Part shown: piece by piece, positions 4,529 through 57,223 of the stretch
How the letters are laid out: the number at the start of each line of letters is the position of its first letter
Numbering within the stretch: the first letter of the stretch is position 1
Assembly: GCF_018977255.1 (NCBI RefSeq)
Contig: NW_024704783.1
Span: 248,001-312,000 of the forward strand
DNA length: 64,000 nt
Origin: Callorhinchus milii
Lineage: Eukaryota
Reading direction: 5' to 3'
Notes under the pieces: generated by a model
The model's input: the letters and a program-made list of their open reading frames with translations, nothing else
What the model was told of the DNA's origin: nothing
The model's database searches: none
Translations under genes and position numbers: made by a program

Positions 4529-6642
4529 ATGGTATATTTAACCATTTATGACGTGGAAGTAATTTACTACCCAATTCTTGCAATAGTTGGAGTTCCTGGT
4601 AAGATATTTTAATATATGAATTATTATGGAACTCGTTGTGATTCCTGATAATTTTTGTTCTGCCTGGCTCAGTGAAAACACTCGGTTGAAGTTTATTGGG
4701 ATCTCCTTGGAACTGGAATTATTCCAAAAAAAAAATGCTTGGCAAACTAATTTCAGAACCCAGTCAATCCTCTGGCAGTGTCGATGTTAAGGTTGCTGAG
4801 CCAGGTTCGTGTGTCGGAAGTCGGAGGTATCGTACACCAGAATATTGCTGATGATAGATAAGCTGTGTCAGCCTGGCTAACCAGATGGACCTGGAAGGAA
4901 TAGCGATTATCACTCCCTGCGACTCATGACGCTGAAAGCCGAATCTCTAACACGTAGGGTGTTGCGAAATGGAGTAGGAGCAGCAACGCAGGTCAGACAG
5001 TATATTTAATTGTCATCCATGCAGTATTTAGTTGGTTACTTTCAAGCAATACCCGCAATGTACATGCTGACTGAGATCACCAATTCTTGACACTCTGCCA
5101 GTAACTCCTCATTCTGCGCAGATTAAACTTGGGTGTTTTGAAAACAAGATACAAACATCGAAGGAGAGGTTTCCTTTGCATTCTAGGCATATGGAAATTT
5201 CCTTGTGTATTCGGCATATATATGATGAACTCTTAATTAAATTTCTGAATGTGTCAGAGCCCCGACAGGTAAGACTGTCAGTTCAAGCTCCATTTTGATA
5301 CATTGAATTCATAACCAAGGCTCACGTTGCATTGATGAGAAGCGGTACATTGTCAGAGATGCTGTCCTTCAAATCATGGTAAATCGGTTCAATATTTTAT
5401 CTTAAGAACCGCATCACTGATAGTATAACTGGCTCGTTTCCGACATTTTGCGACAATGTTCCTAAAGTTTGACAGAGTTCAAAAGTCGGGTTGACTTTAA
5501 AAAACAATGCCAATTTGTACAGAGGATGACATTTAGCTTGGTGTTCTGTCAAACAACCACGCAAAGAAAATTGGTCAATTGATTCATTGATTCTTTGGGG
5601 ATATCGCTGTCCCAATATTGGCTACCTGACTCGCTAACAAAGATACTCATTTTACAAAGAACCCAATCTAACAAATTTGAAGCCCGTTTGCCAAATACAT
5701 TACGAAGAGTCTGATTATTATTTCGCTATTCTTATTTTTTTCACAGTTAACTTGTTGGCGATTCTGATCCTCGTCCGTGGAAATTGTGGTCTTTCCAAAG
5801 GCGTCACTCTCTACTTGGTATGCGTGGCAGCGGCAGATCTAATGGTCATTGTCACTGATGTAATATTCAATCGCATTAATAATTTTTATTTCCCCATTAG
5901 TTTCTTATTTTACACTCCCGTGTGCAGTATCAGAGTAGTTTTGGTGGCTTTAGCAACAAAATGTTCAGTCTGGTTTACAGTTGCTTTCACTTTCGATCGT
6001 TTTGTGGCGATTTGTCATCAGAAGATGAAAACTAAACATTGCTCTGTGAAAACTGCTATTTACATTATAATAACATTGACTGTGATAAACTGTGCACAAA
6101 GTGTTCCCTGGTATTTTGTATGTTCTCCTTTGGTGATCATTAATAATTTTCCATTTTACTGCACTGGAAAACCAAGCTATTATTCTTTACCAATATGGAG
6201 AGTGTTTACGTGGTTCAACCGAGTTTTCACTCCTCTCGCTGTATTTCTTTTGATTTCCCTCTTCAATGCTCTGACCATCCGACATATTTTGTTAGCCAGC
6301 AGGATCCGCAGGAGAATTCGGATCAATAAAAATTGGAACAAACAGAATGATCCAGAGATTGAAAAGCGAAGAAAATCCATTATTTTACTCTTCGGTATAT
6401 CAGCTAGTTTTATATTTTTATGGATGTCAAATATTATCTATACATTGAAATGGTCAATTATAAATTATAATTATGAAGCAAAAATTAACAGCTCTCGACA
6501 TGTCTTCCAACAGACGGGATTTATGCTTAAGCTTTTGAGTTCCTGTACAAATACCGTTATCTACGCGGTGACACAGGCGAAGTTTAGAGAGGATCTGAAG
6601 TATGTGTTTAGATATCCTTTTGCTCTCATTCATTTCAAATAA
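4529..6642 (+). CDS. GPR139/GPR142-like orphan class A GPCR, copy 1a. Exon 1 4529..4598, exon 2 5747..6642, 321 aa
   Basis: Exon 1 encodes MVYLTIYDVEVIYYPILAIVGVP and ends G|gtaag. The acceptor tttttttcacag|TTAAC gives an in-frame phase-1 join (...GVPVNLLAIL). Seven TM segments with AAADL (TM2), SVWFTVAFTFDRFVAICH (TM3) and TNTVIYAVTQAKFR (TM7/helix 8) resemble GPR139 motifs as recalled. Confidence 0.92.
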
Positions 6643-7319
6643 ATATATTACGTTTAACAATGAACGAAAACAGTGCTTGCTGTGTTTCATTCGTACATAG
6701 ATGGGACATTTGGTCAGACGTTTCCCAGCAAAGCAACTCGAGATAATTCAAATGTTGCTTTCTATCAGTTCGTAAATCGTAAGCTTCAGGGTGAATATAT
6801 CTAAGTTAAGTTCCTCGTATTCCGCAAGGCTTTCGATCAAGCCTTAAGAAGCTCTCATGATGAAACTGAGTAGCCAAGGGAAATGCAGTTCCTTCCTGTT
6901 TCAGTCGGGCTAAAAATTTATCCGCAATGTGTATTTTACCGCCGTGATCCAAATAAAGATCGAGAGTGGACACATTGAAATCGTCTTCCTTGAAAGCTGG
7001 TGACTGCAACGTCACCCACGCTATTCAATATGTTCATTAATCATGTGTTGGATGGATTTGAGGCAGGAAGTCTTGGTGTCGCTGTTGCAAAATTTTCTGA
7101 AAGGATTGAGTCACTACGATGGCCGCTGTTGTGCTGCCGGTGGAACCACCTGTGAAGCTTTCATGCTGAACCCACCACGTTGATCATTTCTCAACCCAGT
7201 TCATATTGTTGTTTTGAACTGCTCAACGGAACACATTTGCAGTACTCCAAATATTACCTTACTGCTCTTCTCATGTTTTTCCCATCAACTTCTTTTCTTA
7301 CACTTCCACTCATCTATCT

Positions 7320-54450: not shown

Positions 54451-55037
54451 TTTATCACATGCAAGCAATGTTAGTATTATGATTAATGTAGTTACATTTA
54501 TGTCTTGTTCAAGTTTTGCATTTTAGATTGTATTTTTTGTGCAGTACAATTTTGTTTAAAGAAGAATGATTTATTTTCCGTGGTAGGAAACTGACTATAA
54601 AGTGTTTTAAACCAGATGGCGTTTGAGTATGTGAAACAATGTCTACAATATTTTGGATTAGGATAGTTATCAACTTAGCAGCTCAAATGATTACATGTGC
54701 AAAAGTAGAAGCATAAACTCTTGCGCATTGGACTCACTTCTCAGAAACGACAGATTTTCAAATATCAACGGAATAAAAACAATGTGAAATCATTATTGTT
54801 GTTTTTCTTATTTTCATGTGTGGTTTCACTGATTTAAAAGGCATACCTCACGGATTAACGGTCGCTAACATAATCGTTCAACAGATTGTCACTAATTGCA
54901 GCTTGTGAGACCTGCAGATCTCACTGGGAATTCATCTAAACAGTTTAAATAATGCTCTTTTCTGCCGTCCGAATGACACAATTTTCACTGGTACCCGTAC
55001 GGCCAGCGCCAGCATTTGTGACTGTTTCTCACAGAAA

Positions 55038-57223
55038 ATGCATCGACAGGAATTTGTCCTTCCGATAACCTACATTTACTATCCCATCCTCGCAGCCTTT
55101 CAGGTCCCCAGTAAGTGGTTAAAACGAGGCAGCATTGAGCTGATCATGTACCGATTCTGATTGAATAACATATCCATACATTGACGATGGAGTTTCCAGG
55201 TCCACACATCCTTGTTCAGTTGGTATGGAGGGGGGGTGGGGGTACCGAGATGTAGCAAGCTGCAATCATTGTGAGCAGATGTTAGCCCGAACTCACAATT
55301 TGCCTGATCAGGTGGACATCAAACTACACTTAATGTGACGGCTTGTGTCATAGCCAAAATCGCTCAAATAGTATCGCACATCTCGAGAGAGAAAGCCTTT
55401 TATATTTTTGAATAGGGCCATATAATCTTTAATGTCCAAGTTAACAGGCAGTTTACTGGTTCGAATGCAATCAAAAGTAGGTGTCACCCTGACTCAACTG
55501 GTCGCAATTTCACATGTAGCTTAGAAAGATGAGGGTTCAAGCCCCAACTCAGGACTTTGAACGAAAAGGCCGTCACTACCCAAAGCAGTCTACCGACTCC
55601 ATAGTTGAAATCGAGCGTCTTCCAATGAGACAGTAACGTGACATCTCCCACCCCCAATGCGCATACTCAGATGGACATTGCATATATATAGCACAGATCA
55701 TCCTCTATGTTTACACAATAATGTACGCAGGAAGTTGGAGGTTACAACAGAAGAACCAAGAACAGCTGGTGTAGTCGGAGATGCTACCAGGGCGGGCAAA
55801 TCAAGGTAGATGGGAGAGGTTTGGCCTTTGTTCACTGTAAAAGTACGTTCAATAGGGGAGCTAATCAAGATGTTTCTAATTATAAAATGATTAATGAGAC
55901 TAGCGTAAATAGACTGTTACCGTTGGATGGGGAATGCATTTATAAGAGAACACAAGTTTGATACAGTGACTTAACAGGGATTATGTGAGAATGGAGGAGA
56001 TTGAGGGATGACGTCGTGGAACGGGATTAAAGCGGAGCAGAACGACTTGCACAGAACGATTGAACCGAATTGTCTGTTTCTGTGCTGCTCACACTTTTTT
56101 TATTATTTGTAAAAAACTTGTCAAAGAGCAGGGTCTTTTCAGCCTAATGTAGCCTGTTTTTGTTGAGGAGTAAATAATAGCAAATTGATGATTCATCCGT
56201 TCAGTTCTTATTTCATTTTGTTTTGCAGTGACATCTTAAATATCATTATACCGGGTTTCTCAACACTGATTTTGCATTGTCAATCCGGTATTCTCTCTTT
56301 CTCTTCCAGTAAACCTAGTGGCCATCGTGATTCTGTACAGAGGAAAGTGCGGTCTCTCCAAATGCATTACTCGCTACCTGGTGGCCATGGCAGCGGCAGA
56401 TCTGATGGTGGTTATATTTGATGTGATATGTTACCGCACTGGTTACCTTTACTTTGCCACCACGGTGCTGAACATCACCCCGGTTTGCCGCGTCAATATA
56501 GTCCTATTTAAGGCCTCCACAGATTGCTCTGTGTGGTTCACAGTTGCGTTCACATTCGATCGCTTCACAGCAATTTGTTGCCAAAAGCTGAAAGCAATGT
56601 TTTGTACTGAACAAACTGCGGTCAAGGTGATCAGCACATTCTTTACCATAAACTGTTTGACGACAATTGGGATATATTTTTCATTCGGTCCTCGCTACGT
56701 TATTAATAACGTATCATGGGGCTGCATCCACACTGAGAGCTTTAACTTGTTGCTTGGATGGAAAATCTATGCCTACATTATATACTTTTGGAATCCTTTG
56801 CTCCCATTCCTGTTGATTCTGCTCCTCAATGCTCTGACTGTTAGACACATACTGGTGAGCAGCAAAGGCCGTGTAAGACTCCATGCTGGCAATATTGGCG
56901 GGAAGCGGAAAGATTCCGAGATGGAGAGTCGCAAGAAGTCCATTATTTTACTCTTCGCTGTTTCAGGCAGTTTTATTCTTCTCTGGATGACTTACGTGGT
57001 CAATGGCATATACGGCCGTATCTCGAAAAACTACTATTACTCAGGTTTCGACGATCCGTTGTTCATTAGACAAGAAGTGGGGATTATGCTCCAGCTCTTC
57101 AGCTGCGGCACCAACACGTGCATTTACGCGGTGAGCCAGAGGAAGTTCAGAGAGGAGCTCAGAAATGGTGTGCTCTTCCTATCCGCTCAATTACTAAAAG
57201 TAATAGCCTTGGGAAAGCATTGA
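55038..57223 (+). CDS. GPR139/GPR142-like GPCR, intact diverged paralog 4. Exon 1 55038..55110, exon 2 56310..57223, 328 aa
   Basis: Exon 1 MHRQEFVLPITYIYYPILAAFQVP A|gtaagt; acceptor ctctttctcttccag|TAAAC gives an in-frame join. Open 7TM frame with AAADL, DCSVWFTVAFTFDRF and TNTCIYAVSQRKFRE. Confidence 0.93.
55490..55690 (+). mobile_element. Older Deu-domain SINE 5' part in the intron
   Basis: GACTCAACTGGTCGC...GAGGGTTCAAGCCCCAACTC head, then GTCTTCCAATGAGACAGTAAC and CTCAGATGGAC. Confidence 0.55.
55720..56090 (+). mobile_element. CR1-type LINE 3' fragment in the intron
   Basis: CR1-like ORF2-end remnants, ending GAACCGAATTGTCTGTTTCTGTGCTG. Confidence 0.65.

Follow-up and report, generated by a model that had tools for sequence, protein, structure and literature searches.

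A tandem cluster of two-exon class-A receptors in Callorhinchus milii from a putative third, cartilaginous-fish-expanded branch of the GPR139/GPR142 group

A 64,000-nt stretch of the genome of the elephant shark Callorhinchus milii (hereafter the window) carries six receptor loci, termed c1 to c6, all of which are two-exon class-A G-protein-coupled receptor (GPCR) genes; four are intact (c1, c2, c3 and c6) and two are pseudogenes (c4 and c5). On balance we favour the view that these loci form a tandem GPCR cluster within a large, cartilaginous-fish-specific third branch beside GPR139 and GPR142, in which the paralogs share a transducer and have diversified their ligand pocket, and which most likely serves chemosensation. 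The chemosensory role is one that we infer from the behaviour of the gene family. An earlier note on this DNA, made from its letters alone, had read the locus as a birth-and-death array of GPR139/142-like receptors from a cartilaginous fish; the source is indeed a holocephalan.

Receptor loci and their nearest relatives

The six loci were found through an open reading frame (ORF) listing together with tblastn searches using the two long receptor ORFs, and the splice sites of all of them were read directly off the sequence (Table 1). The coding sequences of c1, c2 and c3 are 100% identical and specify a spliced product of 321 amino acids with a 7tm_1 domain, to which the c6 protein is 47% identical. 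In every locus the first coding exon (70, 70, 70, 70, 73 and 73 nt from c1 to c6) terminates at a GT donor in phase 1, inside transmembrane helix 1 (TM1) and directly after the G-x-P of the TM1 motif Y-Y-P...G-x-P. The two pseudogenes carry different lesions. In c4 a deletion with frameshift has removed the end of TM3 including the DRF motif, and TM6 contains two in-frame stops. In c5 the acceptor is changed from AG to TG, frameshifts and an in-frame stop are present, TM2-TM3 is missing and the 3' end with the C-terminus is lost. Thus the tblastn matches and splice sites bear out the six copies of the earlier note, namely three identical, one diverged and intact, and two inactivated, as well as its shared 70-73-nt first exon splitting TM1 at phase 1, which is seen in six of six loci.

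A weak TM7/helix-8-like tblastn match at 53069-53179 (+; 35% identity over 37 amino acids, E 0.02) may be all that is left of a seventh copy, and was left out of the count. The best database match to the c1 protein is the public UniRef model P0001 from C. milii, 100% identical over residues 24-275. This model for c1/c3, which covers window positions 5677-6642 and 24014-24472, is mis-spliced: it starts within the intron and misses exon 1, and its 3' end joins TM7 to an unrelated downstream ORF.

The products belong to class A according to their core motifs and their PF00001 (7tm_1) scores of 58.8 and 55.7 bits against a gathering cut-off of 30.5; this generic domain is the only one that Pfam recognizes. 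Among solved structures in the PDB, GPR139 is the best match, both for a single sequence (42.5 bits, E 3.9e-10, versus 29.7 bits for the next receptor) and for a 64-member family profile (74.7 bits, E 6e-20, versus 47.7 bits). Maximum-likelihood trees with two outgroups likewise place the family closer to GPR139/142 than to other class-A families. The chondrichthyan family is monophyletic, with a support of 99 in the Shimodaira-Hasegawa-like approximate likelihood ratio test (SH-aLRT), and it joins proteins of salamander, coelacanth/teleost and anchovy/caecilian in a clade (95), the sister group (86) of GPR139+GPR142 (100). In a HMMER profile search, in which c6 was represented by exon 2 alone and 1.84 billion representatives were scanned, full-length proteins of salamander, coelacanth, teleost and caecilian, automatically named 'probable GPR139', scored 114-223 bits on the family profile, compared with 75 bits for GPR139 itself in the PDB search.

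Gene structure agrees with this placement. A phase-1 intron occupies the same position after G-x-P in Hypanus GPR139, Carcharodon GPR142, an Odontesthes GPR210-like gene, family genes of Heterodontus and Scyliorhinus, and the six window loci, as expected of one superclade related to GPR139 and GPR142. Since identical intron position and phase are a rare genomic character, this supports the relationship; the near-universal proline at 7.50 is missing from GPR139 as well as from the family. GPR139 and GPR142 as nearest named relatives, a point of the earlier note, are therefore supported by the profile scores and the identical intron.

Descent of the window genes from GPR139 or GPR142 by duplication, which the same note had implied, is ruled out, as cartilaginous fishes keep both genes as separate conserved orthologs and the family lies outside their clade. 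A search with the human GPR139 core retrieved GPR139 orthologs from Hypanus and Mustelus that are 85% identical to the human protein, and GPR142 orthologs from Carcharodon, Leucoraja, Hemitrygon and Callorhinchus itself (P0232). The GPR139+GPR142 clade (SH-aLRT 97-100) excludes every family member, and the window genes are orthologs of neither gene by clade membership.

A 2019 survey of Ensembl GPCRs gives the name GPR210A/B to coelacanth, gar and fish gene sets adjoining GPR139/142, and the vertebrate-genome listing found there mentions no cartilaginous fish (PMC6504862). We infer that the bony-vertebrate relatives recovered here are GPR210A/B from the taxa and the description in that survey, and not by accession. 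From the trees and the gene structures we propose that the family arose when chondrichthyans expanded an ancient third branch of the GPR139/GPR142 group, whose low-copy bony members are provisionally GPR210A/B. The group would then originally have comprised at least three branches, one of which is not seen in amniotes in the present sampling.

Family size, ligand pocket and function

The family is large. Proteins clustered at 90% identity were searched, and species counts were taken from the best 120 matches of each list. Spliced c1 matched 1905 clustered proteins at E<=0.001 and a second search matched 2521; the best 120 of each are all chondrichthyan. In these listings Heterodontus francisci is represented by at least 55 distinct 90% clusters, Heptranchias perlo by at least 48 and Callorhinchus by at least 11. 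At 50% clustering the family profile retrieved 139 representatives at E<=1e-30. Together with the six window loci, two of them pseudogenes, these numbers describe a large lineage-specific repertoire with tandem arrays and broken copies, and the low genome-wide copy number that would have spoken against the earlier note is contradicted by the at least 55 distinct proteins listed for one shark. Neighbouring family copies were absent within +/-10 kb of the Heterodontus and Scyliorhinus loci examined, and arrays therefore appear looser in these larger shark genomes, though many of the genes share chromosomes.

Most of the best 120 c1 matches bear the automatic name 'probable G-protein coupled receptor 139'. 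Such names are inconsistent across the family and also include 'neuropeptides capa receptor-like', 'C-C chemokine receptor type 3-like', 'GPR15-like' and 'uncharacterized', and counts of gene families by name will undercount this one or misassign its members.

A family tree of 13 Callorhinchus and 57 elasmobranch sequences places c1 and the pseudogene c4 within a Callorhinchus-only clade of seven (support 93), c6 within a Callorhinchus clade of four (support 100) that is sister to two elasmobranch ortholog groups, and c5 elsewhere in the tree, apart from both. A paralog of the intact gene c6, P0401, lies on another C. milii scaffold and is 96% identical to it. There, positions 1165-12330 of locus L005 (GCA_018977255.1, MU249868.1) are a 94-96% copy of window positions 47703-57374. 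As this locus carries both the first exon of c5 and the c6-like gene P0401, the whole gene-plus-pseudogene module of c5 and c6 has been duplicated. Downstream of P0401, L005 contains a second, more diverged piece resembling exon 2 of c5 (82-90%). The pair c6 and P0401 differs by 13 synonymous and 14 non-synonymous changes (synonymous divergence dS 0.061, non-synonymous divergence dN 0.019) and by 7% in the intron. Because dN/dS is 0.31, both genes are under purifying selection, and they are presumably functional. The family is thus old and combines stable subfamilies with lineage-specific bursts, unlike a birth-and-death process that is fast throughout. Young duplicates next to old paralogs, and copies broken independently, uphold the birth-and-death pattern of the earlier note; its 'rapid pseudogenisation' is half the picture in view of the ortholog groups and the c6 dN/dS.

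The residues that line the GPR139 pocket have been listed from cryo-electron microscopy, and among class-A receptors Arg6.51 is reported only in GPR139 and GPR142, where it is essential for recognition of agonist and of L-Trp/L-Phe (PMC8807744). We aligned 94 family members with 31 GPR139/142 orthologs. Arg6.51, Glu3.32, Phe3.33, Trp170, His5.43, His6.58, Asp7.35 and Asn7.38 are invariant in the 31 orthologs, and are replaced and variable in the family. At 6.51 the family has Tyr in 63 of the 94 members, His in 10, Asn in 9 and Arg in just 3; c1 has Asn and c6 has Tyr, so that the arginine characteristic of GPR139 and GPR142 is not retained. As this residue binds the carboxylate, amino-acid ligands are not inferable for the family, nor are its ligands predictable from GPR139/142. 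The analogy to amino-acid sensing drawn in the earlier note accordingly fails, with Glu3.32, His5.43 and Asn7.38 replaced in addition to Arg6.51.

Variability is concentrated where a ligand would bind. Mean entropy at the 20 GPR139-pocket positions is 2.34 bits within the family, compared with 1.14 bits at the other 242 positions (Mann-Whitney p=6e-7), and this relation is reversed in GPR139/142 (0.47 bits in the pocket versus 0.88 bits elsewhere, p=0.013). The intracellular motifs, by contrast, are nearly invariant: RGKCGLSK in loop 1, DRF-x-AIC, DPEMENRRKSIILLF before TM6, N-T-x-I-Y and KFREEL. DR and W6.48 are present in all 94 members, and N-T-x-(I/V)-Y has Ile in 92 and Val in 2. As class-A receptors the proteins are atypical in that both conserved prolines are gone, P6.50 being mostly Thr and P7.50 always Thr. 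Position 2x57 is Asp/Glu in roughly half of the members, and so is 5x43; these acidic residues speculatively suggest amines as a ligand class. A diversified pocket above a conserved transducer face is the combination known from chemosensory multigene families, and the variable pocket with its nearly invariant inner face fits a ligand-diversified repertoire on one signalling route.

We envisage that each paralog would couple to the same transducer via the conserved inner face and would bind a different small ligand in its diversified pocket. Taken together, the receptors would discriminate between ligands, most likely as a chemosensory repertoire of olfactory, gustatory or solitary chemosensory cells, with new specificities arising through tandem and segmental duplication and some copies being lost. 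The further-reaching idea that this is a major unrecognized chemosensory (olfactory or gustatory) repertoire of cartilaginous fishes, class A and unrelated to OR, TAAR and ORA, we put forward tentatively and regard as doubtful. Several points weigh against the favoured explanation. Whenever paralogs bind different ligands, positions facing the extracellular side will be variable, whether or not the receptors are sensory. Many subfamilies persist as stable groups of orthologs in sharks and batoids, some of them short-branched, which also fits conserved receptors for internal signals. Ten related proteins checked for spliced transcript contigs proved to be genome predictions throughout or a single-exon Logan contig. 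In a paper on catshark sensory organs, the 50 transcripts most specific to a 'brain & olfactory epithelium' library reportedly include no GPCR, which is weak counter-evidence because receptors expressed in few cells rarely reach a top-50 list. The trees, moreover, are quick searches with SH-aLRT support only, long branches and two distant outgroups.

The short-branched ortholog groups of sharks and batoids lead to the view that the family is an expanded neuromodulatory or metabolic set, sensing neuropeptides, metabolites or nutrients in brain, gut or endocrine tissue. The nearest relatives GPR139 and GPR142 are internal sensors (PMC7318219), and the purifying selection on c6 would suit such a role. 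Receptors of endogenous ligands, however, do not usually come in dozens of paralogs per species, in tandem arrays that include pseudogenes, or with a pocket that is hypervariable beside an invariant inner face, and the ligand-contact residues of GPR139/142 are not kept; we therefore consider internal sensing unlikely. Lineage-specific tandem expansion with pseudogenes is also typical of immune receptor families, and a leukocyte repertoire, for example of chemoattractant-like receptors for microbial or host metabolites, might be suspected from the members named 'CCR3-like' or 'GPR15-like' and from chemokine receptors being the second-best PDB matches. These matches, however, lie 27 bits below GPR139, several of them span only TM6-TM7 and the automatic names contradict each other, which makes an immune function very improbable.

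Organization of the window

The window has a G+C content of 42.6% and four runs of N. None of these gaps touches or crosses an exon, intron or reading frame of the six loci. The first three lie at exactly the same base of a repeat unit of ~8.4 kb, with the same flanks, and since this point precedes each ATG by 455 bp, c1, c2 and c3 each sit on a contig of their own. Segments are termed X (carrying the gene), Y, Z and W'; Y and W' are unrelated sequences, and the first contig of the window ends in W'-Z.

Table 1. Coordinates of receptor exons, assembly gaps and repeat units in the window
Feature	Position	Strand	Remarks
c1 exon 1	4529..4598	+	70 nt, ATG to phase-1 GT donor; encodes MVYLTIYDVEVIYYPILAIVGVP+G
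c1 exon 2	5747..6642	+	AG acceptor 5745-5746; runs through stop
c2 exon 1	12940..13009	+	identical to c1 exon 1
c2 exon 2	14157..15052	+	identical to c1 exon 2
c3 exon 1	21363..21432	+	identical to c1 exon 1
c3 exon 2	22581..23476	+	identical to c1 exon 2
c4 pseudogene exon 1	30942..31011	+	70 nt; ATG and GT donor intact
c4 pseudogene exon 2	33462..34332	+	deletion and frameshift, two in-frame stops
c5 pseudogene exon 1	47998..48070	-	73 nt; ATG and GT donor intact
c5 pseudogene exon 2 remnant	46796..47532	-	broken acceptor, multiple lesions
c6 exon 1	55038..55110	+	73 nt, GTAAGT donor
c6 exon 2	56310..57223	+	spliced product 328 amino acids, intact, 7tm_1 domain
Assembly gap	3885..4073		455 bp upstream of c1 ATG; just outside the array at 4529-57223
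Assembly gap	12298..12484		intergenic, 455 bp upstream of c2 ATG
Assembly gap	20709..20907		intergenic, 455 bp upstream of c3 ATG
Assembly gap	39927..40148		between SINE copy and simple-repeat block, between c4 and c5; genes unaffected
Repeat unit 1	4074..12297	+	one contig: X (c1), Y, then Z; Y|Z junction ~11072
Repeat unit 2	12485..20708	+	one contig: X (c2), then W' and Z; X|W' junction ~16976
Repeat unit 3	20908..27908	+	start of contig: X (c3), Y, then unique sequence

The units of c1 to c3 are 99.7-99.9% identical, and their differences are mostly single-base indels, chiefly in homopolymer runs, as is typical of read errors; the copy number of exactly three consequently depends on the assembly. 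The three copies rest on the scaffolding plus two novel junctions inside contigs, Y|Z and X|W'. It is unlikely, in our judgement, that the triplet is in part an assembly artefact and that the true locus has fewer or more 8.4-kb units, even though every unit is interrupted by a gap at the same base and the contigs of units 1 and 2 are both exactly 8224 bp long. The flanks of the two junctions do not have a common repeat that would explain a chimeric join, and by our own reasoning the shortest path using every observed junction and both unique ends requires three copies of X. We think that a very recent triplication of the ~8.4-kb unit is real. A single-copy explanation of c1 to c3 was dropped as the likeliest reading owing to the two intra-contig junctions, and is retained as a rival.

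Segment W' also contains a tRNA-Leu (anticodon TAG) at 1791-1872 and 18615-18696 (+), detected with 61.9 bits by Rfam and called by ARAGORN too. Being located in W', it was duplicated along with the repeat unit, and may represent a genuine tRNA gene that came along when the unit was copied. Copies of a tRNA-derived short interspersed element (SINE) with a tRNA-Ala-like head, 80-96% alike, occur at 2486-2812, 11072-11235, 19310-19636, 30304-30631 and 39593-39912. The first of these straddles the W'/Z boundary, from which it follows that the Y|Z junction near 11072 cuts through a SINE.

Imperfect TC/AC-rich low-complexity repeats extend over several kb at ~38950-43600 and recur at 62522-63034, and contain long spurious ORFs (SLSLSHTHT...); the fourth gap is at the edge of this repeat block. 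Degenerate ORFs at 28084-28986 (-), 31721-32233 (-) and 37343-38300 (+) belong to one repeat family: 28315-28983 matches 37632-38300 at 74% in inverted orientation, and 28084-28896 recurs as a 96% copy inserted into the paralogous locus L005 (8836-9656). The long inter-gene ORFs (28237-28986, 31724-32233, 35510-36079, 37343-38107, 49110-49589 and others) matched no family in a Pfam scan. These ORFs are probably degenerate retroelement remnants outside the receptor array.

Comparison with known receptor systems

The genome paper of the whale shark repeats earlier reports that GPCRs are few, and odorant receptors very few, in cartilaginous fishes. Despite this reported scarcity, genomes of sharks, rays and chimaeras hold dozens of copies per species of a class-A family labelled 'probable GPR139'. 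Full-text searches of the literature turned up no paper describing the chondrichthyan expansion; the genes themselves already figure in databases, under an automatic name that misleads, and the family as a distinct, expanded, pocket-diversified branch appears undescribed. Its separate branch, the lost amino-acid-binding arginine and the diversified pocket lead to the testable hypothesis of a new ligand-sensing repertoire in the sister group of bony vertebrates. If chemosensory, the family could help to explain how sharks, rays and chimaeras sense odours with very few canonical odorant-receptor genes.

With GPR139, a vertebrate orphan class-A receptor that senses L-Trp/L-Phe (PDB 7VUG), the family shares the TM1 motif Y-Y-x...G-x-P-x-N, two coding exons with identical intron position and phase, retention of W6.48 and the lack of P7.50. 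It differs in that phmmer matches the two only weakly over the 7TM core (42.5 bits, E 3.9e-10), in that the family does not conserve Arg6.51, Glu3.32, Phe3.33, His5.43, His6.58 and Asn7.38, and in that it mostly has Thr for P6.50 and has DRF for DRY; moreover, GPR139 is one highly conserved copy, as opposed to dozens per genome in the family. The pharmacology or function of GPR139 should hence not be transferred to the family genes. GPR142, an aromatic amino-acid sensor of pancreas and gut, forms one clade with GPR139 and has the intron position and phase in common with the family; its differences from the family are those of GPR139, and the window genes are not GPR142 duplicates.

The GPR210A/B-type proteins of bony vertebrates are the ones that join the family (SH-aLRT 95) and share the phase-1 intron, as seen in the Odontesthes GPR210-like gene. 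In the proteins sampled, Lys/Arg is kept at 6.51 and W6.48 is mostly missing, whereas in the family Arg6.51 is replaced and W6.48 is invariant; they look low-copy in the present sampling, and the chondrichthyan clade is massively expanded. The odorant-receptor and TAAR families are a different class-A subfamily, and their coding regions are typically intronless, unlike those of the two-exon window family. The likeness to them is one of genomic behaviour: tandem arrays, recent duplicates beside old paralogs, pseudogenes, and conserved intracellular motifs combined with a variable binding pocket.

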